Part shown: in pieces, positions 22,801-57,792 of the stretch
How positions within the stretch are numbered: position 1 is the first letter of the stretch
Layout of the letters: the number at the start of each line of letters is the position of its first letter
From: Hyphochytrium catenoides
Lineage: Eukaryota; Protista; Hyphochytriomycota
Assembly: GCA_900088475.1 (NCBI GenBank)
Contig: FLMG01000154.1
Span: 182,744-246,743 of the forward strand
Direction of reading: 5' to 3'
Length of the DNA stretch: 64,000 nucleotides
Notes under the pieces: generated by a model
Told to the model about the DNA's origin: nothing
Seen by the model: only the letters and a program-made list of their open reading frames with translations
Database searches by the model: none
Made by a program: the position numbers and the translations under genes

Positions 22801-25453
22801 GCTTCTGCTGCCAGTGTATTGTCTGCTAACACTTTCGACGAAGAAACTTCTTGTAATCTCTCCTTTGATTGTCCGGGATCTGCGATCGTCCATGGACTGC
22901 GTTTAATATCTCGATGGCTCGCCTCGCGATTTTCTGTTCTAGGTGTATACAGAAGTACACAAAAGAATTCGACGCGTGGAGAGCGCCGAGACTTTGTTCT
23001 TTCCCGACGGACCTCGAGGAGGAAGGAGAAGAGGAAGGAGGGCCGTGGGTCTCGCCAACAGATTGGTCCTCCCCCCGCCGCACCATTTTTGGAGACAAAG
23101 GTTAGTTTATATGTTGATGGAACTCCAGACCGCTGGAATTAGCAATCAGACCCAGGAGGAAGGAATGAGATGACGTCGCAAACGGAGAACGGTGCGCCAC
23201 TCACAATAGGAGGCGTGGATGCTGAAAAATCCACCAATAGGCAGAATAGCGAGTGGAGGGAGAACTCAGCTTCCTGCTTGTAAGAACGCGATAGTCTCTA
23301 AGCATTGTTTCATCAGGACGCTAGACAAAGACCGGGACTCTTCCTGGGACGTCCGCACTGTAGACAGCTATGACAGCGCGTATGACCGAGATGAAGATTG
23401 TCAGTTTCTCTTCAGGAGATCCGTGGAAAGTGACTTCACGGAGGATCTGGAGGGCAAGAAAGAAGGAAGGATAATTTTTGATCAAGAGCAGGAAGAAACG
23501 AAGGGTGACGAGGAGGTAACAGCTCAGCAGGAGTTGGAAGGCCGACAAACCGCTTTAGAGCATCACAACTTAGAGGGCAGTGATGACAATCAGAACATTG
23601 AAGAAGTCAATCGCCTCCAAAACTTCAGGTGAGTTCATCAGGTCTAATGAGGCTCTAGGTGGGTTTTCCTCCTCGCTGCAGTCATGTACATTCCATTGAC
23701 CCGTATTCGCAACGGGCGATTGCTTCCGAGATAACTCCGCTCCTCCCCAGTCATAAAGGCGAACCTTGTGCCGGTCTGGCTTTTGGCACTTCTTTTCAAT
23801 ACAATGTAACTCTGTACATACAAATGTCATTGTGTGAGCGTCGGACTCTCCATGTACGCAATTGGCTGCTGTCTTCGGTCTTCTGTTCAGTCCCGCCATT
23901 AGGGTCTTTTCATTAACTGGTGGTTTCTTCGAGGGCCTGGTGCTTTCTTCCCCTCACAGTTGCATGGGCTTTTTCGGTACTTACTGTCTTGGGTCAATAA
24001 TCTTTGTCTGACTATGTAGGACTGGTTGGACGAGCGGAATCGTGATGGCCAGTGCGCGGTAGACCATCTACTTTCGCTGAAGTTCTTCAAGCAGCTAGTC
24101 AAGGGCCTCAAACACATCCACTCGCGAAGTATTATCCATCGAGACCTTAAACCCGCCAACGTGTTCATTGGGACGGACGGAGTCCTCAAGATTGGGGACT
24201 TTGGGCTGTCGAAGCTGCTGAGTACTAGTCTTTCGGATGGTGGGCCATCTGTCTTCCTCCTACCATCTCTCTTGCTGAAAGTGCCTATTAGTCTCCCTTA
24301 TGAGCGTATTTGTCCTCCATTTCCACTAGTACACATGGACCATGCTTGAGACGCCTGTCCTCACTATCAACTGGTCAACTGTCCTGCCCTTACGATTGTT
24401 CCTCCACTAATGTGTGTTGGGGACGCACTCCTCTTTGCGTAGATCTTGAACTGGATAGCAGGGGCTACCCTATCGTTGAAGGAGAGGATCACACTATTGG
24501 TAAGCAGTTACAAGGCAGGGAAGACTTTTATTACGCGGCACTGGGCAACTGGATGGTTATGCGGATAGGATCTCTCTTTCCTTGCCAGCTATCTAGCTTT
24601 TGCCTAGCTCTCAGCTCTCCCCCTCCAGTCTCTGTCGATGTCTCATATAACCTCCAACATTGGCAGGTGTGGGCACACAATCCTATATGTCTCCTGAACA
24701 GACAATAGGGGCACAGTACAGCTGTCTCTCTGACATCTACAGTCTGGGTCTCATCCTCGTTGAGCTCTTTGTCGCCTTTCCTACGCGTATGGAGCGTGCG
24801 AACTGCTTCAGAGATCTTAGAGGGCAGAGACCGGTCATACCTGAGGTAAACAGCGTTTCCTTGTGGTCTCCTCGCAGCTACGTGGATGGATTGGCGTACA
24901 CTTGCCCTAAGATCCGCGCTGGTCTAACGAGCATTCCTTCTGCTTTGTTGGCTAGCATGGGTGCTGCTATTGTCTCCATTGGTGGCACTAGATGTGCCCT
25001 ATCTTTCCGCGTTGCTTGCTTAATAGCCTACGACTCCTTCTTTTTTTCCTCTCTATCTCTCTACAAAGTGGTATCCTGCTAGATTTGCACTATGTCACCT
25101 TGGTACATAGACTTTACTTCTCCGTTCCTGGACTCTCGCCATTCGCACCCAACTTTTTATTTCTGGTCTCTTGTTGTTATTCTCCAACCTTGTAGGTGAT
25201 GAGACAGGATTTTCCAGCAATGGCGGAGATAGCACAGCAGATGCTGTCCCCGAACCCTTCGGAACGGCCCTCCGCTGCTCAACTTCTATGCTGTGGGCCT
25301 CTGAAGGAGAAAAGTGAGAGAATTCAGCTTTTGCAGAACGAGGTGCAGAAGCGAGACGCGAGGTTACAAGAGCAGGAGAGTATAATAGAGGAGCTCAGGA
25401 AACAGCTTGCAGAACTTAGCGGCACCGCAGCTCATGCCCTGACCCCACACTAA
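19830..25453 (+). CDS. eIF2-alpha kinase, HRI (EIF2AK1)-like, multi-exon; start uncertain
   Basis: HRI-type N-terminal helical domain (IIILLAQICGFYDPTPKTFVLTVLRFYDSGVID). SRYQREFEELEPLGRGGFGSV...YAIKKI; LREVQCLASLDHANVNRYYSAWLE; long acidic insert; TLYIQMSLCE (family signature); IIHRDLKPANVF; KIGDFGLS; HTIGVGTQSYMSPEQ; SDIYSLGLILVELF..F.T.MER; RPSA. C-terminal coiled coil (IQLLQNEVQKRDARLQEQESIIEELRKQL). No TM helix, dsRBD or RWD/HisRS domain seen. Confidence 0.9.
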
Positions 25454-26326
25454 TCAATCGCGGAGTGATCAACACTCTCAGCATCAGATAGAGGATAATA
25501 ACGAGGCGGATCACCCTCGTCTGCCAAGTAAAATGTTAAAATACATGGTCCGACTCATGATGTTAACGCGAATTTTCTTGTTGTCCCCTTTGACATTCCC
25601 AAAGACGCTTATGACGGGGTTATCCTCTTCAAACTATGGCAATGTCCTTCGCTGGCATCAACATCAAGAGTCAAGAGAAACGCGCAGTGACTTCTTCTTG
25701 AGCTCTCTTTCTTGGTCTCTGGACGGATGAGACTTCCTGGCGGTGAGGCGAATCTTTCTGCCTGCATTTCCATTATTGAGAAGTGTGTATCCTTTCAATG
25801 AATGGAGCTCACAAGAACGCCGTTTTGCCTTCAGCATACCTAGGAATCTATGGTAAGTAGAGCCAAAACAATGTTTTTGTTTTTATAAGCAAGGGCTAGA
25901 TTCACCAACGGTGAGTGGGGGAGAGAAGCGCTACCCCCTTCCGCCAATATTCTTTCGGTGGCGTCGCAGACCCCGATGGGCTGGGGGTAGAATCAGAATC
26001 AGAAGGATCTTCAAGCCGTGTAGGTGCGACATTCTGCCCATAACCGTGCAGCTGCTTTTTTGGAGCTCACTGAAGGAGTGCCAGGCCTTGTCCAGTGCCA
26101 AAAAGCTCAGCCTCGACAGCTCATCATTGCGGCATTTGCTTCCACGTCCACGAGGACCAAGTCTTTCTCTGCTTTTCGCCGTATCTGATACGGTCGTACG
26201 CCCGCTTTGTGGTGTTTGGATGGGCAGCCAATAGGCAGCTTACCGAGCCATACGGCCCAGCTCTGTCCGCTTTGCATTTTAAGCATGCAGATGCCGTAGA
26301 CAAAGAGAGCGGTAGTGAGAGTGGTG

Positions 26327-29300
26327 ATGACTGCTGTCTCTGGTCTCTACGAGTTTGCTCAGAAGCATCACTTGCAGCCACCCGCGTTCTCGTTCACCCA
26401 GGAGATTGAAATAGATACTATCTATTGGCTCTGTCAAGCCACTTTTCCGGGACTGGCTTTGTCTGCTTCGAGCGCAGCGTGCCCTAGCAAGCAAGCTGCC
26501 AAGCTTGAAGCTGCCAGCTTCCTTCTGGAGATGCTTCCCCAAAAAAGAACCCTACCGGGAACTGGAGTTGTGCGTGGTGGAGGTGGAGAGAGAGAAGAGG
26601 AAGACGCTTCGGCGATCTCTAAGCTCTATCAGTTCGCACAGGCGAGGGCTATTTCCCCGCCAGAGTTCTCCTGCTTACCTGGCCCCAGCTTTTCTACACA
26701 CTTTCCTAGCTGGCAGTGTTCTGTCTCTTTGCCTAGAGCACCAGGAGGCGGTTCTCTAATTGTGAAAGGAGGAGAAAGACCAAGCAAACAGAGTGCCAAG
26801 GCCGCTGCTGCATCTGAGATGTGGACGCTTCTCCACTCTAGAAGGGCGAGCTCTTCTTCTTCCTCGGAAGTTACCACTGCTCTTTCTCCCTTAACCCATG
26901 GAAACGGGACGCAACGTTCTTCTCTATTCAGAGAGTTAGACCATGTCACGCAAGAGGAGGGAGAACTACGAAGCTCTTCCGTCCCGCAGCAGAGCCCCGT
27001 TAGCCAGGTCATGCACTTCACACAGATGCACAATTTGAGAGCCCCCACGTGTGACTATAGGATTGGACCCAACCCTCTAGGACTTACGCCTTTGCATCAG
27101 TGTATCATGTCCTTAACATTAATCAGGGAAGGGAGAAGTGGTCTAGACCTAGGAGGAAATGGGAGCCCTTTAACAAATGGAGCAACCGTGATATCGGCAA
27201 CGAGTGGCTTTCATAGCACTAAACGAAAGGCAAAGGAAGAAGCTGCGTCAAAGCTTCTTGAAGAACTTACTCGGCACCAAGAAGGATCGGTGCACGAAGA
27301 GTCTCCGACGGTCGCATCTTCTATTAGAGCTGGAGAAGTGCTCCCGTCATCTTCTGCTATTATCAGGAGAGAGACTGTCTCCAGAGACATGTCCCGCAGA
27401 CTTCAAAGAACCAGTTATAGCGTGGCAGTGGAGAGAGTGGAAACCGACGTGGGATTTGTAGCTCGAGCCTCCTTCTCCTCTCTTTTTGCCGAGGGAACAG
27501 GTCGGTCCAAGAGCCACGCCCAAGAAGCTGCCTTGTCAGCTCTGGAAGCAAAGGTCTCAATCCAAGAAGGCAAAGAAACGGAAGAGGAAGGTAAAGGGAG
27601 CTGCTGCGAGGGGGGTAAGCAAAGAGGGAATGAGAAGAGAGAGCAATGAGAAAGGGTTGGACACCAAGCAACGGAGAGGAGGAAAAATCAGCGTTGCTGG
27701 ATTCGTGACTCCGCTTTCTACTCTGATGGTTGCCGATGTACAGTGCTATCTCAGTTGGTTCTTCCGGCTTGCATCTTACAAGTCTCATACCTGCTCTAAC
27801 TATGCCTACGACCGAGCTCCGCCGTCCATGATGTACATTCTGATCTATCCTGGAGCCTTGATTCGAGTATCTTCCTTTTACTCTCTCCCTCTCTCTCTCT
27901 CTACTCACTCTTCTTTTGTTTCTCGCTTCATCTTTCTGCATCACTTCCTTCCTATACCTTATGTGGTAGGGCCTCCAGCTCCATTCGAAGAACGCCCGTA
28001 CCAGACTGAGCTTGTCGGGATGGCCCTCCGTCGAAACCTTATAGTCTTCCTACCTACGGGCACAGGGAAGACGTTTATTGCCATTCAGACAATCAACAGG
28101 CTGGCAGACGAGGAGAAGCGTGCTCCAAGAAAAGTGATGATGGATGGCTCTCTCTCTTTCTTCCTCTGTAGGACTGTCATTCTCACGCAACAGCAGGCAG
28201 AGAGGATTAGTAAAAAGACAGGTAAGACGTGGTGTCGGAGAGGTACAGTCGGCCCTTCATGACTATTTTCCTTACTCCCTTTGCAACTTGCCGCCTGTTC
28301 GTTGCTGCTCTTTCACGCACGTTGCATGCCATAAGGACGCGGCTATCGAAGTTATTCTTTAGGGTTTCTAACCTAGTTTTCTTCGATCATCGTGCTCCCT
28401 CCCTGGATTGGGGGTTAGACCTTGTTACCAAAGCCTACTACGGGGAAATGAACGTCGATCAGTGGTCAAAAGCGGACTGGGAAAGAGAGTTTCTCTCGGT
28501 GGACGTTTTCGTCATGACTCCTCAGATTCTCCTCGACTTGCTTGACCGAGCATTTCTCTCACTGAGACATTTGCGTGTGCTCGTTATGGATGAGTGCCAC
28601 CACTGCTCTCCTAAGAAAAAGAACCCAGAGAGTGTCATCTTCTACCGACATTTCTGGAGTAGTAAGCTTGGGACCTTGTGCGGTAATCAAGGAGGGATTG
28701 AAAGACCAGATGGCAGCAGCAAGCCGCGGGTATTAGGGCTTACAGGGACACCTTTTGATCCTAATCAGCTTAAAGAGTTCTTGGGGAGCTCTCTGGCTAC
28801 CTGCAGCGCGAAATACTTAGAGCAAGTAGAGAAGCACATAGAAAAAGAAGTGGACACGCTCTATTTCCCAATTTCCACTAGTTGGCACGCGCTCAAGGAT
28901 AAAATGGAGAGGTAAGGCTCTCGTTCTAGCTGAACATTTATGCTTTTGTGCTTCCGTATTCTTGTTTCTTGTCCAGCTCTTCTTTCAACCCGACACCTTG
29001 CAAGCTATCTGTCCTCCCACCCATGCAGTCTCCTACGGCAGTCATCAGTCTGGGAAGGCAGTCATCAGCCTGGGTTGACAGTCGCACAGCTTACGGGCCA
29101 ATCTGGAGCTTATGACCTGACCGTATCATTTCTTTTCTCCAACGCTAGGCTTCGATGCAATCTTGGATCTGCTGCCGTGGAGATCATGGAAAAGCTGGAC
29201 GATTTCTCATCGCCAGCTGAAGAGCTTTTAGAGTCCGTGTCGCACAACTGGGAAGACGTCTTCGAAGCCGGATCAGAAGAAGGTGCGTTCATTGGCCGCC

Positions 29301-32300
29301 ACTGCCAGTAGCCATCTTGGCTGGCGGTCTCATCGAATTCCCATAGGAAGGATGCTTGACCAAAAGTTATCAACTTCTCTTCTTCCTCTTCCACCCGTCC
29401 ATTTTGGTGCCCTCCATTTCACAAGGTCCTCTTGCGGTTTGTGCTGGTCAAATTTTTGCCCTCACTTTATTGTCGTCAGCCTTCATTTGGTCGGCTCTCG
29501 CTGGCTCACTTGCAATCTACTTGTTACTTTTTTCAATTGGACTCCCAGATTTGTCCCCTAAGGTTTGGAAGCTCCTTGATATCCTGGATGCCGAGCTCCA
29601 CACATGGGGCAAGCATTTGAAATGCCTTGTCTTCCTTAAAGAGACTGTGCATGCGTTAGCGCTTGCATTGATTGTGCAGGTGCGCTTATGATTGGCTTCG
29701 AAGTCCCAATCCTTCTACGCTTCCTGTTGTGTTCTCATTCGATGTCATAGCCGTTCTCCGAGCCAATCGGTCTCTTTCCTGCGTCATTACTTCCCATCAT
29801 CCTTGCTGCAGCGTGAGTCCAATAGGTCGGGTGACATCTCTGATTTAATCACTAGGCCTATCTGAGGGCTAAGTGGCCTGGATTGGGCTGTGACTACGTG
29901 GTGGGGCAATCGCGAGAGGTGAAGCTCCGGGCTCACCGTCAAGCGCTCGTGGTTGAAGAGTTCCGCAAAGGTTGTAAAGCAAGAATTCCAAGATTTGGTT
30001 CTATATATTTCTAGTTGCTTTCTCTCTGCAGCAGTTGCCCTAACAACAGCCCTATATCATTTCCATCGCTGATACTTTATGCTTTTTATTACCTGTTCTG
30101 TACTAGCCATTGAATGTCCTGAACTGGCCCTGCCGGCACTCACATGCTCCATAGGTAAAATTCAGGTACTGGTGTCCACTTCCGTAGCCGAGGAGGGTGT
30201 GGATGTTCCTTCGTGCAATCTCGGTAAGGCTTCGTAATTGTCTAGAGTTGAACGTTGGGGGATCACCCTCTTCTGCGACGGCGTATTTCTGTCATTTTTG
30301 CACTTTTACGCTTCCATAAGATGTGCGGTGGTCAGAGATAGGCTCAGCGACAAGAGGCAGGGTAGAGGATCTTAGATGGACGTCGTGCACGTTGCCTAGA
30401 ATGCCTTGAAGTTCTCGTGCCCAGAGTTGTGCTCATAATCCGTGCTCATCCACACTACGTCAAAATGCGGCAGTCGTGGCGTTCGATGACATCTTCAACC
30501 GCTACCAGTACCACCAACAAATTGGCAGACTGAGGAAGAAGTCTTCCCGAGCTGTCATGTTCCAGACGCTAGAACAAACGGAGAATAGAGTTGAGCAGGT
30601 AACTTATCCTTGAAAGGTCTATTATTCTAAGCCTGGCCATGTCATCCTCTACCTAGATGGATGACTAAACAGCCACCTGTGGCGTCCTGCAACCTGAGAA
30701 GTCTGTCTGAGACCGAATCTCTTATCATTGTATCATCACCTGTGTTTCCCTTCTCATCTACCTATCTATACCTTCTTCTGCCTCAGTTCCGTTGGCGTTC
30801 GTCGTTCATCCTATTCTTATCTATAGTGAGGCTCTCCCAATCCGCCGCATCACGCACTTGATCTTCTCCTATGTTGGTGCCCCATGCGCTTTGAACATTA
30901 AGCTTCTTTCCCGACGCTTCTCTCATATATGCCAGGCCAAGCGTCATATGGTGGAGGCCAAACGCGAAGCTATCCCGGCAGATGCAACTGTTCTTGAGGA
31001 TGTAGCGGAGTTCATCTCGCATCCTACCACCGCTTTCCACACCGATCAAGGGGCAGAGCTTAATATTGATTCCGCCATCCGCCTGCTTTATAACATCTGC
31101 TCCAAACTTAGGAAGGATACCTTCGCCCGTTGGGAGCCCAGTTGGGACTATGACAGGGTACGACATCCTCCGTCTTGGCGTCTGTCTCTTTACTCCAACA
31201 CACTGCTTCCTTTCCTATGATAAACTCCCTTTTTGGGCCTTGTTACCATATCCTGATTGTCCTTCGAGACTTCTTGGGAAAGCAACTTGCTCTCTTCAGT
31301 GACCTGATCTTACGTGGGCCATTGCTGTTCGGTCAGAACTGTCAGTTCCGTCCTCTGCCCCTTTATATTTGCTGAGTGAATGGTTCCTATCTCCACTTAC
31401 TCAAATAACTGCCTGCCCCTTACCTTTTCGGTTGTGGGTGCCTCACTCCGTTCCCTTTTCTTGAAAGAGTCTCGCCTTTGTCCTCTCACACGGCTCCGTC
31501 GCCCTCTCTCGCAGGTCACGGGAGAGCTGGCGCTCTACTTGCCCAAGACACTGCCACTCAGTTCCCTGGTTTTAAAACAAGAAGTACTTGTCTCCCTTCC
31601 GAGAAGCAAGCAGCAGTTGGCCTTCAAAGCTTGTAAAGCCCTACACGACGAAGGAGTCATCGATGACCATCTGCGTCTTGTACCAGGGCTTCTTCCCTTG
31701 AGGACGCCTCCTGTTCCTAAGAAGGAGAGGGCTTACATCCGTGCTTTGTTGCCTCCTCGTACTTTGGCCGGCAGAGAGGCTTATACCTCAGCTGAGACGA
31801 TGGACCATGCAAGTGAAGAGGCTATGCGCTTCTATCGGACTGATTTCATTCTGCAGCAGTCGGCTGGTGAGGATGCCAGCGGCAATGCGCAAACCCTGTG
31901 TCCTCTGTATTTCTTAACGCTGTCCCGCCTGAATGATGACGCTTTCTCTTGCACGACCTCCTGTTCACGGCCCTTCCGCTTTCACGTAAGTGGAACTGGC
32001 GAGACAGTGTCACTCGCCTCTGTTACTCGCGAGAACTGTTTTAACTTCTCGTGGCTAACTTCTCAACGGGAGAGCCTCGAAGAAGGTGATTTCGTCATCC
32101 CGGCTTCTGCTAATGCCGAAGAAAAAGCGGCAATTGGAGGAAAGTACCTTGTAATGAGAGGACCGGACTTCGAAAGTAGCGTTCACGAATGGGACCTCAG
32201 CAATGAGGAGATTGAAGATGAGTTGAAGGAAGAAGAGCAGGAGGGACACGACGAAGCGGAAGAGGAGAGAGCTGCAGGCATTGAAAAGGATAAGCCCTAT

Positions 32301-34648
32301 CAGATTCTGCGAAGAGAAGCAGCATTGAGTGCGGAAGAGCTTGAGGATAAGAGAAGACGCAAGGAATCTGCTTTTATTGAAAATGTGTGCAAGGAGTTTG
32401 AGCAGTGCCTCAAGACCTCTGAGCTGAGAGACATGAGAACCTTCTGTTCAGAGCTCTGTCTGCTCCGTGCGGCTCTGTCGGACAGAGTGAATGGGCTGCA
32501 TCTCTGTGGTGGGAGAGAAGAATGTAGGAAAGGAGAAGGAGACATCGGCTGTGCACGACGAAAACGATGGGACTATCAGGCGTTAGAGTATCTCGGAGAT
32601 AGGATCTTGAAGATTGTGAGCTCCTCTTTCCTGTTCCTCTCTCTTCCTGGTGCCTCAGAGGGCAAGCTAACCTTCTCAAGATCCAAGCATATCTCCAACA
32701 ACTTCCTTGCAGCGAGAGTCAATCGTGAGGGTCTGCAGAGCTACCTCATGAAAGGATCTGACAAATGGCTGCCTCCTCTATCGTATACTCCTCTTCCGTC
32801 CTCTTCACTCTCCAGTCAATACGAGGAGCCCGAGGACCAGAGTGCCAGACCTGTTAAGCTCAAGTCTGTGGCAGATATTGCTGAGAGCTTGATCGGCGCT
32901 GCATGCGTGGAGAGAGGATACGAGGCTGCTTTGTCTACGATTATCTCGGACCTGAAGCTCTTGAGCCTTCCTCATCTCTCCTCTTCGTCTATTTCTTCGG
33001 ATTCTTCCCCTTCCCAGCTCTTTCGTGCCATGGTCAGTCAGTATCTCAAGGCTGACATAGAAGACGGGAAAGGAGGCATCTTCGAGCTAGACAATGAGGT
33101 TCTGAAATTGAGGAGAAGGAAAGCGGCTGTTTCCCGCCTAGAGGATGTTCTCTCTTACCGTTTCTTGCAGCCGTCTCTTGCAGCTACTGCTCTCACGCAT
33201 ATCTCCGAATGTGACCCTGTACTGGGGGAACAGTACGCTGGAGGTTGTCGCTGCTTTGCCATCTTTGTCTTCGCTCTTCACCATTTATATTAAGAACTCT
33301 TCCGCCTAACACCCAAGGTCTCGTACTGCCTCTTGATAGGGTCTACGGGCTGGCTCTACCCTAAGACTCTTGCTCTCTTATGCTTTACCCTTGCACTTGT
33401 CATGGTCCTGTCTCGTTTTCTGCTCGAGGACTCCACTTTCCGTCTTTACGTGCGTATTAGAGTCTAACTAATGGTTGTGCTGACTGCTGAATGTCTCCGT
33501 AGTTCCGTCTTATGAGCGACTGGAGTTCCTAGGGGACGCAATGCTTTCCGGAATTTTAGCGGAGTATATGCTGAAGGAATTCCCAAATGTATGACGAGGG
33601 GGAGACAAGACACAGCGACCCACGGCACACGAGGGGGTATCATGTCAGGGTCAAGGCGGGTTATCATCTGAGAGAGATGTGCCTGTTGGTCTAGCACTAG
33701 GTTGTTATAAGGAGGGGCACCAAGTCTCAAGAGCATTTCGTCTTCAATATGGCCAAGGGACGGGGAAGAGTAGAGCCTGAGATGAAAGCTACCCTGCAGC
33801 TGATGGCGTCGATATTGACTAGCTGCTCTCCGTTTCTTTCTTGCCTTCTCGTCTGCTAGAGCACCCCCGGTACCTATCATATAAAGGAATCTGCCTGCCT
33901 AAAGAACCAGAACCTGGGCAGTGTCGCGATAGCATTAGGCTTGCACAGGATAATTCTCCATGCCTCCCCAACTTTGGAGAGAGCGATTGACCAAGCTGAA
34001 GCCTGGTGGCAGGGCAATGGAGGCGCTGCAGAGAGGAACATCGATCAAGAGGAAGTCTCACCGATAGAAGGAGGGTTGAGGGAGCAGGAGGTGGAGGAGG
34101 ATTTGGAGCTCCCTAAACCGCTTGGAGATGTCCTGGAGGCAGTTGTCGGCGCATTATATGTTGATTGCCAGCTAGACTATGAGGTCTGCAAGGAGATACT
34201 CTGGAAGAAGATCATGCCGAAGATCCTTGAGATAGGTACAGGTCTCTTCTGGTCTTCTCTTTTCCCTGCCTCTCTCTTGATAAAGTATATAAGCAATCGG
34301 CCAATCTCTCACTTTCTTGACAGCTCCTTATTATTTGACAGTTCCTGACGATGTCGTGTTACTCCTCCGTCAGGCATCACCTCGGATCCTGTCAGTGATC
34401 TCTTCACCTTACTACAGGAGAAACGTTGGAAGTATAAGGAGGAGGTTGACTTCAAGCGAGACAAAGACGCCAGGAGGAAGCAAAGAGATGGCCAAACGCA
34501 CCCAGATGATCTATGCTCCTACTCGTTTATCATTGAGGGAAAGAGTTATACTGGTGTTGCCTCATCAAAGCATTGGGCAAAGAAAAGAGCAGCCAAGAAG
34601 GCGCTGCTTGCCCTGGGTAGTGCTCTAACGGAGAGAAATCTAGCTTAA
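26327..34648 (+). CDS. DCL: Dicer-like endoribonuclease with four N-terminal dsRBDs: (dsRBD)x4-DExH helicase-DUF283-RNase IIIa-RNase IIIb-dsRBD, ~1,750 aa, ~13 exons
   Basis: Approximate exons: 26327-27590, 27970-28221, 28419-28911, 29149-29282, 29549-29679, 29856-29970, 30154-30223, 30474-30598, 30936-31157, 31515-33210, 33503-33588, 33860-34235, 34374-34648. Motifs: RPYQ, LPTGTGKT, DECHH, LGLTGTP, LSPKV, STSVAEEGVDVPSCNLVV; DUF283 (AIRLLYNICSKL..D / AFKACKALHDEGVIDDHL); IIIa YQALEYLGD...ADIAESLIGA; IIIb YERLEFLGD...GDVLEAVVGALYVD; terminal dsRBD DPVSDL...SSKHWAKKRAAKKAL. Confidence 0.92.
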
Positions 34649-35449
34649 TCATACTGCTAGATATGAGACGGAGAACTCTCAAGCCCGTCGACGTCTCCTT
34701 GTAAAATGCCAGTTGATTGGTCATATTTGTTCTGTACGTGACTATTAGATGAGAATTTTGCATTGTATTCGGCAGTTCTGTCTCGTCCTCTCTGAAGTCT
34801 TCCGTCTACGCCGACTGCGGGTGAGCTTAAGTAGGGTTATTGTCCACCGACCATGACGCACTCCCTGCCGTGCACTGCCGCCCCACATCGACAGAATAGC
34901 TCTCGCTCTCTAGTTCCATGGCCATCATACCAAGACCAGAAGAATGCCCTTCTAATGCGGAGCTCTCAGCCGATGCCTCCTTCCCCAGCTCTCGGTTCGC
35001 GCTGCTGCTGGCTCCTCCGTAGTAAGAAGATAATGACTAGTCCTCCGCCTGCCTGGCAGCAGCACCAGCAGTGCTCCTTGCCAACAAGATCTTCTTCGAC
35101 TTCAACCGGTTTGCCTCTTCATCTTTCTCGAAACCGTAATAAGCCAGATTCAGCCACAAAGGGCCTCCAGCAATCATTAGGATTCTTCATTCATTTTCGC
35201 TTTGTAATCGTAATTTAACAGGCTGGAGGTCGTCGAGTTGGTAGTGGATGATGAGTTGTGCCGATTTTGGGTGGGGGAAGAGCTGCATTATTACTTCCTC
35301 ACAGGGAATATAGAGCATATAAGTTTGACATCAGGCGGCAATATTGCGTTGTAGCACAGCGAATCCGTTTTATTGGTTTGGGAGAGAGAGAGAGAGGATG
35401 GCTTGCTTTCTGCTCTTTTGGACCGCAGGCTAGACCAGCATGTTCTGAT

Positions 35450-35481
35450 TCTCTCTCTCTCTTTGTCTCTCTCTTTGTCTC

Positions 35482-35512
<31 letters not shown>

Positions 35513-35580
35513 CTCTTTCTTCCTCTCTCTCTCTTTCTCTCTCTCAATCTCTCTCTCTCTTCTGTCTCTTTCTCTCTTCT
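35450..35580. repeat. (CT)n microsatellite
   Basis: Directly visible. Confidence 0.9.
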
Positions 35581-35936
35581 CTGTCTGGAGCCTCCCTATT
35601 TCTTACCTTGTTTTGCTCGACCTCTTTCTGTCAGAACAGTTCCTTTCTTTATCATAGGAAGGTATCATCGACATCACCTAAAAGCTTTTATAATCTTTCT
35701 ATTTGTGGGAGAGTCTGGAATAAGTCTGTCTAATAAGCATCGAGGGGCATGTCATAGAGAAGAAACTGCGTGCAAGCTACATTTCTCCATTGGCGGCCCT
35801 TGCGATAGGCCAATACTGAGCCCCACGATGGTCCTTAAGTGAGAGGGACGAGGGCGAGAGCTGCGTGCCTCATTCAAGACAATAGGAGGAGACCGATACT
35901 GAGGAGAAGGAAGCTCTTCCATCCAACATCGGAGAC

Positions 35937-36160
35937 ATGAGTTTCCAGTCCTCGGCTTCACAAGAGCCGGTTCCTGGCCGAAGTGCCATCGCTGACATTG
36001 GTGAGAGACTCAGAAGTGTCGAGCGGGAAAGAGGACAGCGGAAAGAGGACAGGGGAGAGTAAATCAGAGAAGAGAGGGAGAAGAGAAAGAGAGTGAGAGA
36101 AAGAGAGAGGAAGAGGACAGAGAGAGGGACAGACTGAATTAGATAGAGAGACAGAGAGAG

Positions 36161-36197
<37 letters not shown>

Positions 36198-39100
36198 CAC
36201 AACCAGGAAGAACAGGAAAGAAAAAAGCACATGGATATGCATTCTGACGGCCCAATGCACAGAGTCATTCCAGAAGACGTCCTTGCTGCTTTATGTAGCC
36301 TCTCTAGGTAAGACTCAGCCTGTCTTCTGACCGCCAGGACCCGGTGCCTCGTGACAAAAGGCTTCCATGCGTTCTGTCTACCTCTTCCCTGCACACCACT
36401 AAGGGACTTGTTCCTTTCGGCAATTCTCTCCTCCCTCACTTTATCTTTTAGGGCTTGTTGACAAGACAAGGGAGCTACTCGCTGGCGGGCTGTCCGTGAA
36501 CTCTAAAGACTACGATCACAGAACCGCTCTTCACCTGGCAGCCAGCGGTAGGGGAGCTTGCGCCCAATTTTTCCGTCGCCTCATGTCCATGGACTGCTTA
36601 AGGCGACTGAATACCCGTCTGTCTTCAGCTTCTTTTCACTATCCACCTCTGTCTGTCCAGCTTTCCAACACATGACATGCTTGTGCCTACTCATGCCCGT
36701 TATCTTTGTGGTTGTAGAGGGTCAAGTTGAAGAAGTCAAAGTGCTGCTCGAACTGGGGGCAGATGTGAACGCCAAAGACAGATGGGGAGGGACACCTCTT
36801 CAGGATGCTATTAGGCATAAACACGATGAGGTAACGGATAGACCTAGAGAGGACTAAAGCCTGCTTAGGATAGTGTGGCTTTTTCTTCCATCTCGTCTTT
36901 CTTAGATGGAGCTGACCAATGCAGTCCAGTCTTCCATAGCAGAGGCTACACGCGACTTTTGTTAGTTCGCGGCCTCCTTCAGTGGGCCCCGCGTTGTGGG
37001 ACTGCGAGTAATGAAGAATCGCCTTTAACACGCTACAAACACCCCCCCGTCTTGTAGGTGGCCAAGATCCTAAAGTTACGGGGCGCGGCGGTAGATAGTC
37101 CATTTATTTCCGAGGTCATGTGCGCAGCAGCGGGACAGGGAGATCTTGACGAACTGAGGCGTCTGGTAGAGAATGGAGCGCCAGTAGGATCAAAGGACTA
37201 CGATAGGAGGACGGCATTGCACTTGGCGGCATCAGGTTCTGTCCCTCTCCTCTATCAGGCGCTCGCTGCCGTCCTCTTGGTTCGTTCACCTTCAACCTTA
37301 TATGGGTGGGATTGTGCACCTTCCTGGAACTCTATTCCCCACTCTTTCGATATCTGGAGTTGTATAGCATTTGTGGCCTAAGATGATGCCTTGTTTGCTC
37401 CATTCGGTAACACTTACACTAACACTGCACAGAGGGGCATCTTAAGCTCGTGCAATATCTGGTAGAGAGTGGTGCAGATCTTGATGCAAAGGACAGGTGA
37501 GATGCATGAAAAGCAACCTCCGTTGTCCTAGCCTACTCCATGCCACCCAGCTCTCGGATCCCAACCCTTCAGACCTTTCTCTCATGCATTCTACTAACTG
37601 GGCTGTCTTCTCATTCGTTTCAAGATGGGGCTCGGCGCCTCTGGACGATGCTCTGCGGTACAAGAAGCAGGAAGTGGCAGGTATCTTAATCCCCTTGGGG
37701 GTGCTGTTGCTCTCGGGCTGTTACTGTTGGAAGCACCCCTCAGTCTGTCCTGCTCTTCGCCGTTTACTGAACCCGGCATCCTCTCCAACTCGCAGATTAC
37801 CTACGAAGCAAGGGGGCCACCATGAATGGGGTCTCTTCTACAAAGGCACAGGATCTCTGCAACGCTGCTGCTATTGGAAATGTGTACGAGATGTGGTGCT
37901 TCTTTTTCTTTATTTTGTCATCTGATGCTCTTGTCCAGCGATGACGTACTGCGATTGCTTAAGGAAGGGGTGCAGCCTAATGATCATGACTATGACAGAA
38001 GGACCCCACTCCACATTGCAGCTGCGGGTAAGTGCTTTAGACTTATACTCGTCTCTGATGAGAGGCGTTCCTTCGGAAGGTAGACCCAGTTCCCTGACGT
38101 TTGTCGATTTTTAGAGGGTCAGCTGGAAGTAGCTAAGGTTCTTCTAGAGAACGGTGCGAACGTAAACGCTTTGGATAGATGGGGAAATACTCCCCTATCT
38201 GAGAGTAGAAGTGGAAAGCATAAGACCATTAGCCGCCTTCTCTCTTCGAAAGGTGGCCGGATGGCTACTAGTAGAGACAATAATAACTGGGAGATAGGCC
38301 CTTCCGAAGTAGAGTTTCTGGTGAGACTGCTTATACTCTATTGGCTCTGAGTGCGCTCTGTTGTCCGCTTTTAGACTTAGTGTCCTAGATATGAACGCCT
38401 TATCTCGTAGAATGACGGTTCTCTAATGCTATTACGTCCTCTCCCCTTACTTCTTACTTTCAGGACGAGATAGGAAGAGGAGAGTTTGGAACGGTGAGAC
38501 TTAATTCCAGGCCAGCTTCTCAAAAGCATATGTGGTTCCCCCCTCTCTCGTCACTAAATACTAACTACCTCGGATTGTCTCACTTAAAGATCTATCGCGG
38601 CAAATGGCGAGGCCTGGAGGTGGCAGTAAAACGAATTCGAGTGGATTTGGCCACAGACAGGCTCCAGCTCGCCCTCAAGGACTTACACAACGAAGTGGCA
38701 CTGATGAGGTAGAAGAAACCATAGGATGGGGAAAATATGAGGTTTAAGTTTAATTAGACAGAGAGATATGCAACAGGAAAGACTGAAGGTGACGAGACGG
38801 AGGGTGCGGTCAATTTGATAGGTTAGAGAGCGTAGGGATACAAAGCACCAAAAAAGGGAGAGAGCTGTGTGTATGTGTGTGTGTGTGTGTGTGGAGGCGG
38901 GGGCCATGCATCTAGGGAGCACCGCGCCAGTAAGCTCACTGCGTTCCTCTTTCTCCGCATCACCAAGCACCTTTCGGCATCCGAACTTAGTAATGCTATT
39001 GGGCGCTTGTCTGAAGGACCAGCCCTTTCTAGTGCAAGAGTTCATGCCGAACGGAGATCTCCAACATCTTCTANNNNNNNNNNNNNNNNNNNNNNNNNNN

Positions 39101-56262: not shown

Positions 56263-57792
56263 TTAACCTTTACGTTGTTGTTTGACGCTAACTAGAGAAG
56301 AAGAGGATTGGGGTGCAACCTTGCCTTTTCCTCCTGGTGGAGATTTTGCCTTCTGCTCTTCTTGAGCACACCAGTAAAGAAAGCGGTTGTACGGCCCGAG
56401 CAACATCCCATACACCTCATCTTCAACCTTGAGGAAGAGACCTGCGGGCACAGTCCCATCCTTGGAGCTGGTAACAGCCTCACGAACCGCAGCCAAAACA
56501 TTATTTCGCAGAGACGAGCTGATGTTGATCTCATACGTGACGTTGGGGGTGATATAATTCTGGACAATATCTTGTGCAGCGGCCACCCCTTCGGAGCTTT
56601 GTGACTTTAAGTTGAAGTCTTCCATAGCCATTAGGAACACCATGTTCTCCACTGCAAGCTCCCGCACCATATACTCTTTGAACTGCAACTGCGTCTCCTT
56701 CGAGGCGACGAGGTCGGTTCTCAGGTCTTTGATGTTCCGGACTTTTCGGACGCTCTCCTCTTCCTTTTTGCTGTCCCGGGACCCGCCGGATACTTGGCTG
56801 CTAGTGCGCCTGAGGGCATCCTGTCGTTTCCTAACTCTCTGAGCTGATAGTAGCAGCTGTATGGGCATTAAATATAGGTAGGGGAGAAGATATGTGCCGA
56901 TCCAAACGAAAGTGCAAAACCAGCTGAGGTTGTCAAAGATACTTCTGGTCAAGGAGCCGTCAGTGAGGAACTGCTTCAACCAGAAGGGCATCTCTAGAAA
57001 GAGGTATCCTATGGAGACGATAGATGTCACCTTTGTGACAGTTTGCGAAAGGGATATGCCTCCTGCACTTCCTTCAAATTTGCAGCGATGCGCTTCGAGA
57101 TACCGACAAAGAAGGTGCCGTTGACAACCTTAATGACGAACTGCGAGAGCAGAAAATTAAGGTGGGGTCAACAAGGGCCATATGCTCTCAGGAAGTGCAT
57201 GACGGGACAAATGTCCTACTAATAGATGTTGACCTACCTCTGAAGTACTCATTGACGTGCACCTCCAGTCATCCATAGGAAGGTTTAGGGTCTCTGCATC
57301 GCGGCTAGAGAGCCGATAAAGAGGGAAGGTCATGGTGACGACCGTGGTAAACAAGATGCCCATAATAATGAGACGATGGCCCTCATAAAGTGACCGATTG
57401 CGTACAAACCAATTGTTTAGATCTCCGGTTGCCATACTTGCCTGACATCTGTACTTTAGCCATAGATGAAGATGAGTGGTACATCCGTAGGCTGCTGTCG
57501 GGACGTAAGTTAATTGTACGGCTAGAATGTGTGCCCAACAAGGGATGCCAGGAGTGATCAGAGGATGAAGGTAAGAATAAACCGCAGTGGTCATGAACAA
57601 TGTGCTGCCACCAACGATGTGAACGGGTGCAACTGTGAGAGGAAACACGTTGCGATAAGTCCATAACTTGACGACAACAAACACAGCCGTTATGGTTAAT
57701 GCTATTTGCAGAAACCAGGCCAAATAGAAAGCCCATGACCCAGTCCCTGACGGCCAGTTTGATAAATGCGGGTTGGGAACGGTTGAAGCCAT
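56263..57792 (-). CDS. 7-transmembrane RGS protein (plant RGS1-type architecture); one intron and an apparent 1-nt frameshift near 57060
   Basis: Seven hydrophobic segments including PCW in TM3. RGS box FKEYMVRELAVENMVF...IVQNYITPNVTYEINISSSLR...LFLKVEDEVYGML..PYNRF. Confidence 0.8.

Follow-up and report, generated by a model that had tools for sequence, protein, structure and literature searches.

Dicers are thought to require separate partner proteins that carry domains binding double-stranded RNA (dsRBDs). Pairs of this kind, in which a helicase-bearing Dicer works together with a separate dsRNA-binding protein (dsRBP), are human Dicer with TRBP/PACT, Drosophila Dcr-2 with Loqs-PD/R2D2, Caenorhabditis elegans DCR-1 with RDE-4, and, in Arabidopsis, DCL1 with HYL1 and DCL4 with DRB4. 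In these known systems, trans-acting dsRBPs bring in dsRNA, put it in place and modulate the processive cleavage that depends on the helicase (PMC8138440, PMC9279154, PMC8277814). How the partner hands the dsRNA over to the helicase is being actively addressed by structural work. Here, we describe a Dicer gene found in a stretch of 64,000 nucleotides (nt) from the hyphochytrid Hyphochytrium catenoides (hereafter the window, meaning the whole stretch that was analysed), in which the first exon encodes three dsRBDs and is probably joined by splicing, in frame, to the exons of the Dicer helicase. The protein is similar to the Dicers listed above in that the N-terminus of Dcr-2 can be aligned with its exon 2. 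It differs from them in that several dsRBDs would be linked covalently ahead of the helicase, and no PAZ domain was detected; moreover, the type-B dsRBD by which TRBP/PACT dock on Dicer has no demonstrable equivalent here.

Dicers with N-terminal dsRBDs have been reported in protists, but in proteins that lack a helicase, as was stated in an earlier reading of this DNA made from its letters and open reading frames (ORFs) without database searches (hereafter the sequence-only reading). The cases are Dictyostelium DrnB (PMC5056781) and Phaeodactylum Pt2_48138 (PMC2724275, PMC3145265), which share with the present gene the protist origin and a dsRBD located N-terminal to tandem RNase III domains; however, both are without a helicase and carry one dsRBD only, whereas here a complete helicase comes after three dsRBDs. 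The DCL1 of Phytophthora, which represents the closest well-studied relatives if the genome is allied to the oomycetes, is similar in its DEAD helicase, DUF283, pair of RNase III domains and PAZ that is weak or absent, but, unlike the protein described here, has no dsrm domain reported at either end (PMC4791657). In the domain diagrams of a broad sample of Dicers, the DEAD helicase is the leftmost domain (PMC4791657), the Toxoplasma Dicer has been described as devoid of dsRBDs (PMC2877743), and in a survey of fungal Dicers domain losses are the only class (PMC12663654). A review of 2023 asks whether protists hold other Dicer architectures (PMC10328071).

Tandem N-terminal dsRBDs tethered to the core of an enzyme acting on dsRNA are also found in DHX9/RNA helicase A, PKR and ADAR (PMC3597700), but the cores are unrelated, being a DExH helicase, a kinase and a deaminase, respectively, and none of them is an RNase III. 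In the database searched, the dsRBD array has a single relative, the protein P0001 of Rhodomonas salina (EukProt EP00961; E 8e-4), in which three dsrm domains are joined to a nucleotidyltransferase resembling MTPAP/poly(A) polymerase and not to a Dicer. A W-x-C motif with an invariant cysteine in beta2 is common to the dsRBDs of P0001, to the three N-terminal dsRBDs described here and to the C-terminal dsRBD of the same Dicer. No annotated relative and no paper combining an N-terminal dsRBD array with a helicase-bearing Dicer was found, on the basis of the literature and of one sequence search rather than of a database-wide census of architectures. The view of the sequence-only reading, which did not recognise this architecture as described, has survived a check of the literature, in which N-terminal dsRBDs occur only in helicase-less Dicers.

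The Dicer gene and its N-terminal dsRBDs

The gene model (Table 1) was built with GT-AG introns picked by reading the sequence, in such a way as to hold the homology to helicase and RNase III in frame. According to the model translation and to piecewise Pfam scans, the predicted product carries, in this order, three dsRBDs, the helicase, DUF283, RNase IIIa, RNase IIIb and a C-terminal dsRBD. The coordinates that the sequence-only reading had given for the start of the ORF, the donor (27590/27591), the acceptor (27969/27970) and the unspliced stop (27649) were all correct when the sequence was read again.

Exon 1 opens with an ATG preceded by an in-frame stop at 26297-26299 and, if read unspliced, its frame ends at the stop 27647-27649, which lies 19 codons past the donor. 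The chance probability of an open frame of 449 codons is ~6e-10, and the codon log-odds, calculated with exon 1 held out of the training, are +0.18 per codon in the correct frame and about 0 and -0.06 in the other two. As a whole, the exon matches the Pfam dsrm family (PF00035) with 64.2 bits and E 1.6e-17. Among the single domains, dsRBD1 scores 96 bits against a custom dsRBD hidden Markov model (HMM) of which it is itself a member, and dsRBD2 has an alpha-beta-beta-beta-alpha secondary structure in an AlphaFold2 (AF2) model of the 421-amino acid (aa) exon; this model was obtained from a single sequence and, with a confidence (pLDDT) of 40, is usable for secondary structure only. In the case of dsRBD3, Pfam detects the last helix alone (13.4 bits), and a held-out HMM, prepared from dsRBD1, dsRBD2, the C-terminal dsRBD and the three Rhodomonas dsRBDs with the exclusion of dsRBD3, recognizes it over its full length with 23-30 bits, a score equalled by none of 200 shuffled sequences. 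When a profile of the N-terminal dsRBDs was compared with the PDB, the best matches were TARBP2, Staufen, RDE-4, R2D2, Loqs and DRB4, and DCL4 and PKR were matched as well.

The three clear dsRBDs of the sequence-only reading are thus borne out, the first two by Pfam and the third by the held-out HMM. The same reading had proposed a degenerate fourth dsRBD, which found no support in HMMs, profile comparison or fold search. In particular, this segment has no match in Pfam, scores 3.1 bits with the custom HMM (equalled by four of 200 shuffles), reaches a probability of 11% in a profile comparison with hhalign, and its AF2 model (pLDDT 63), with a beta-beta-beta-alpha arrangement, gave no significant match to the PDB in Foldseek. 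Its sole matches among PDB sequences are Staufen dsRBDs (E 0.16, in the beta2-beta3-alpha2 register). On its sequence features, exon 1 is judged to encode three genuine dsRBDs and, in addition, a questionable relic.

The predicted polypeptide has a pair of RNase III domains, a RIG-I-like/Dicer-type superfamily 2 (SF2) helicase and DUF283, and the identification of the gene as a Dicer in the sequence-only reading is confirmed by domain matches and motifs. Pfam recognizes ResIII/DEAD in exons 2-3 and Helicase_C at 30151-30225; the helicase motifs I (PTGTGKT), II (DECH) and VI (QIGRLR) are intact, with GKT present, and the helicase is predicted to be ATPase-competent. Its best matches in the PDB are AncD1D2 (E 2e-12) and Dicer-2 (E 5e-9). 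The match to Dicer_dimer (PF03368) reaches 24.9 bits against a cut-off of 23.7, and in the model translation the catalytic motifs of both RNase III domains are intact (EYLGD...DIAESLIGA and EFLGDA...DVLEAVVGA). PAZ is not universal among Dicers. No Pfam match to PAZ/platform was found in the 637-aa ORF spanning DUF283 to RNase IIIa, but divergent PAZ domains can evade HMMs (PMC12663654) and its absence from this protein is for this reason not proven. The region between DUF283 and RNase IIIa (31721-32576) contains a long acidic, coiled-coil-like insertion (EEIEDELKEEEQEGHDEAEEE...). A metagenome scan with the helicase exon returned one locus (L001), which was discarded for its dense prokaryote-like ORFs. 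Searches for homologous proteins with the complete 637-aa ORF, and with its RNase IIIa region, gave no match inside the length filter applied.

Table 1. Features of the predicted Dicer gene in the window (all on the forward strand).
Feature	Position	Strand	Basis or remarks
Dicer gene	26327-34648	+	13-exon GT-AG model giving a single 1,756-aa ORF
Exon 1, encoding the dsRBD array	26327..27590	+	421 codons plus 1 base (1,264 nt); ATG at 26327
dsRBD1 (aa 3-70)	26333..26536	+	Pfam dsrm 21.9 bits, E 2.6e-4
dsRBD2 (aa 94-172)	26606..26842	+	Pfam dsrm 30.1 bits, exceeds gathering score
dsRBD3 (aa 221-314), with ~20-aa insertion between beta2 and beta3	26987..27268	+	Held-out HMM
Fourth, dsRBD-like segment (aa 349-412)	27371..27562	+	GxGxSKxxAxxxAAxxAL-type motif only
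Predicted intron 1, phase 1, 379 nt	27591..27969	+	Donor 7.6 bits, acceptor 9.3 bits
Exon 2, helicase start (RPYQ, motif I PTGTGKT, motif Ia)	27970..28221	+	Pfam ResIII/DEAD
Exons 3-8, remaining helicase (DECH, TGTP, Helicase_C, motif VI QIGRLR)	28419..30598	+	Pfam, translation
DUF283/Dicer_dimer, exon 9 and start of exon 10 (intron 31158-31514)	30936..31720	+	Pfam PF03368 24.9 and 12.7 bits
Central exon 10 region, acidic insertion	31721..32576	+	No PAZ match in Pfam
RNase IIIa, within exon 10 (31515-33243)	32577..32912	+	Pfam PF00636 53 bits; E/D catalytic motifs readable in translation
RNase IIIb, exons 11 and 12 (intron 33589-33859)	33503..34235	+	Pfam PF00636 35 bits; ERLEFLGDA motif
Exon 13, C-terminal dsRBD and stop codon	34374..34648	+	Pfam dsrm 30.1 bits

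The predicted junction between exon 1 and exon 2

The donor G/GTAAAG at 27590/27591 and the acceptor TAG/GG at 27969/27970 are compatible in phase (1 + 2) and would give ...KETEEE-G-PPAPFEERPYQ...PTGTGKT, in agreement with the positions and the phase match reported by the sequence-only reading. With a position weight matrix trained on introns 2-12 only, both signals (Table 1) fall within the range of the training set, which is 4.6-11.1 bits for donors and 5.7-14.1 bits for acceptors: no GT in 27250-27969 scores higher than the donor, which belongs to the top 1.6% of the GTs of the window, and no AG in 27650-28010 other than the acceptor exceeds 2 bits, the acceptor belonging to the top 0.5% of AGs. 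Purines make up 80% of the first 100 nt of the predicted intron and pyrimidines 83% of its last 100 nt, and its size is near that of introns 8 and 9 (337 and 357 nt). The unspliced stop is separated from the acceptor by 320 nt, and the spacer to the upstream gene measures 873 nt.

The acceptor falls where canonical Dicers have their N-terminus, since residues 5-6 of exon 2 align with residue 9 of Drosophila Dicer-2, as they do with residue 9 of AncD1D2, and there is no ATG at this point. The segment 27726-27968, read in the frame of exon 2, appears intron-like because its score of -0.25 per codon falls in the range of the other introns (~0 to -0.6; exons, +0.18 to +0.46). In DNA runs X1 and X2 a heterozygous bubble was observed at 27584-27773, with the two alleles at approximately equal depth and differing by 10 substitutions and by 1-nt deletions at 27617 and 27694, which indicates that the gap between the two exons lacks coding constraint; all the other indels in these runs lie within predicted introns or upstream of the gene, and none in exon 1, a distribution in keeping with the exon-intron model. 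The divergence in the bubble is ~6% over 190 nt, and the flanking exons differ by ~1% or less. As judged from these sequence features, exon 1 is probably spliced in frame to the Dicer helicase, producing a fused transcript. The covalent dsRBP-Dicer fusion put forward in the sequence-only reading is favoured in this respect by splice signals, phase and the open ORF, and has the standing of a prediction.

Several observations weigh against this junction. The covalent join at 27590/27970 is itself predicted from splice signals. A search for RNA sequencing runs returned none, and a search for runs of any kind returned six, of which three, DNA runs, cover the stretch and three very small, unclassified ones contain none of it; four of the six were compared with the window, and no joints were seen. 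In the whole 379-nt gap the frame of exon 2 contains no stops, compared with 9 and 2 in the other two frames (p ~0.01-0.02 in composition-preserving block shuffles), and includes ATGs at 27630, 27726, 27828 and 27831; the sequence-only reading had noted, correctly, that no Met occurs between the acceptor and RPYQ, but had overlooked this stop-free frame with its four in-frame ATGs. An ATG at 27646, with a donor at 27656 (6.4 bits), would form a mini-exon phase-compatible with the same acceptor, giving MRKG-PPAPFEERPYQ, a short beginning of the canonical Dicer type, and the first 100 nt past the predicted donor score as coding-like in all frames, unlike other introns. As for the exon itself, seven of the eight listed single-nucleotide polymorphisms (SNPs) between samples are nonsynonymous, with no sign of purifying selection in this small number, and a phmmer search of exon 1 against 1.84 billion representative proteins returned one weak match, from Rhodomonas, and no self-protein. 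A metagenome scan with exon 1 found nothing, an exact look-up of the 440-aa ORF and of P0001 gave no record of either, and searches of the ESM Atlas returned generic Dicer or dsRBP clusters only.

The open frame with its four ATGs, the phase-compatible mini-exon and the coding-like, purine-rich tail that runs to the stop 19 codons past the donor would all suit two adjacent genes, as would the fact that known Dicers work with separate dsRBPs (PMC8138440). A dsRBP of ~440 aa (26327-27649) would then act as a cofactor in trans, and a separate Dicer would start within or just after its 3' end, either from the mini-exon joined to 27970 or, unspliced, from the ATG at 27726 or 27828; a milder version provides for an alternative promoter from which both long and short isoforms are made, and the mini-exon start at 27646 would fit such a short Dicer isoform. 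Nevertheless, the unspliced starts (27726 and 27828, and likewise 27831) would translate the intron-like pyrimidine tract and bypass the only strong acceptor of the region, while the ATG at 27630 is frameshifted in the second haplotype. Given that the gap contains 8 ATGs, a pair of ATG and donor like that of the mini-exon would, on a rough estimate, be expected to arise by chance, and the purine-rich stretch after the donor could be the relic tail of a former stand-alone gene. Furthermore, with only 0-180 nt available, the Dicer promoter would be forced into the coding or 3' region of the dsRBP. The INR/FPR promoter pattern of oomycetes showed no enrichment, with 13 matches where 15.9 would be expected; it had no match in the gap and a weak one 47 nt upstream of the ATG at 26327. 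All considered, we regard two separate genes, or a short isoform only, as rather unlikely.

Exon 1 might also be in decay or have lost its function, as a relic, for instance, of a former dsRBP gene, and be included in no productive mRNA, but this is very improbable. The prevalence of nonsynonymous SNPs, the lack of the exon from any annotated protein and the degenerate fourth domain would be in line with decay, but the frame of 449 codons is intact in all samples, exon 1 is free of indels in runs X1 and X2, the three dsRBDs retain full-length profile matches and the coding score is positive in the correct frame only. Scarcely credible, finally, is the assignment of the dsRBD exon to the upstream gene, which would make a PKR-like protein: the neighbour, which has the same orientation, shows its greatest similarity to eIF2-alpha kinases and PKR does pair dsRBDs with such a kinase, but the kinase ORF stops at 25453, the dsRBD frame is closed on its upstream side by the stop mentioned above, the AGs before 26327 are in purine-rich context only, with no pyrimidine tract, and the order kinase-dsRBD is the reverse of that found in PKR.

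Each of the three DNA runs has contigs that agree with the window as far as 26604, or from 28147 onward, and beyond these points run for >100-250 nt into unrelated sequence; extra read depth was observed at 25900-26300. The breaks at 26604 and 28147 may be due to a second copy that has diverged, or to a repeat with GA/CT-rich stretches in common; the two sides are connected by no joint. Upstream of the Dicer gene, the eIF2-alpha-kinase-like gene (24026-25453, forward strand) has its best PDB matches in EIF2AK1 (HRI; E 2e-10) and EIF2AK3 (PERK), with MEK at 2e-6 and PKR and GCN2 also matched, and its protein has a coiled-coil tail at the end; a kinase of the translation-shutoff type is thus located 873 nt from the dsRBD array and the Dicer. 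Downstream of the Dicer stop there are ~1.2 kb of CT/GA microsatellite-rich DNA (35258-36469), which on either strand gives rise to spurious ORFs 190-200 aa long. Further away, on the reverse strand (56263-57792), adjacent ORFs resemble, as judged by translation only, a seven-transmembrane segment with an RGS-like domain after it, the layout of a fusion between G-protein-coupled receptor and RGS.

Proposed gene fusion and cofactor function in cis

If exon 1 and exon 2 are joined as predicted, a single gene would connect, through splicing of the 379-nt phase-1 intron, three dsRBDs and a degenerate, dsRBD-like segment of ~70 aa to the helicase, and the dsRBDs would be tethered ~15 residues ahead of a helicase predicted to be ATPase-competent. 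We infer that, in this position, they would act in cis as TRBP/PACT, Loqs/R2D2, RDE-4 or HYL1/DRB4 do in trans: the dsRBDs would catch the dsRNA and deliver it both to the helicase and to the RNase III centres, and an array in cis would raise the local concentration of the substrate and could replace the cofactor. Such a gene may have originated from the fusion of a once-separate dsRBP gene with a downstream Dicer; the locus has the look of a fusion because the exon boundary corresponds to the canonical Dicer N-terminus, and because a short, purine-rich and coding-like tail and a stop persist just after the donor.

In its fullest form the proposal is that a full-length, ATP-dependent Dicer captured its dsRBP cofactor by gene fusion and that the three dsRBDs, together with a degenerate fourth module binding protein, fold onto the helicase in cis, making a self-sufficient dicing machine, and a counterpart, natural and in a single chain, of the Dicer-TRBP or Dcr-2-Loqs complex, in a hyphochytrid, an oomycete-related stramenopile. 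We put forward this complete picture tentatively, and consider it doubtful as a whole. The thought that the fourth segment might dock on Hel2i, in the manner of TRBP dsRBD3, is an idea by analogy.

Should the two exons belong instead to two genes, a head-to-tail pair of dsRBP and Dicer next to an eIF2-alpha kinase would point to the cofactor of a poorly studied stramenopile RNA interference system. If the fusion is true, it would represent a clear case of gene fusion via the creation of an intron, and structural and biochemical studies would gain, in the natural single-chain cofactor-Dicer, a 1:1 construct that is tractable. It would also be evidence that the partnership between cofactor and helicase predates, or recurs outside, animals and plants.

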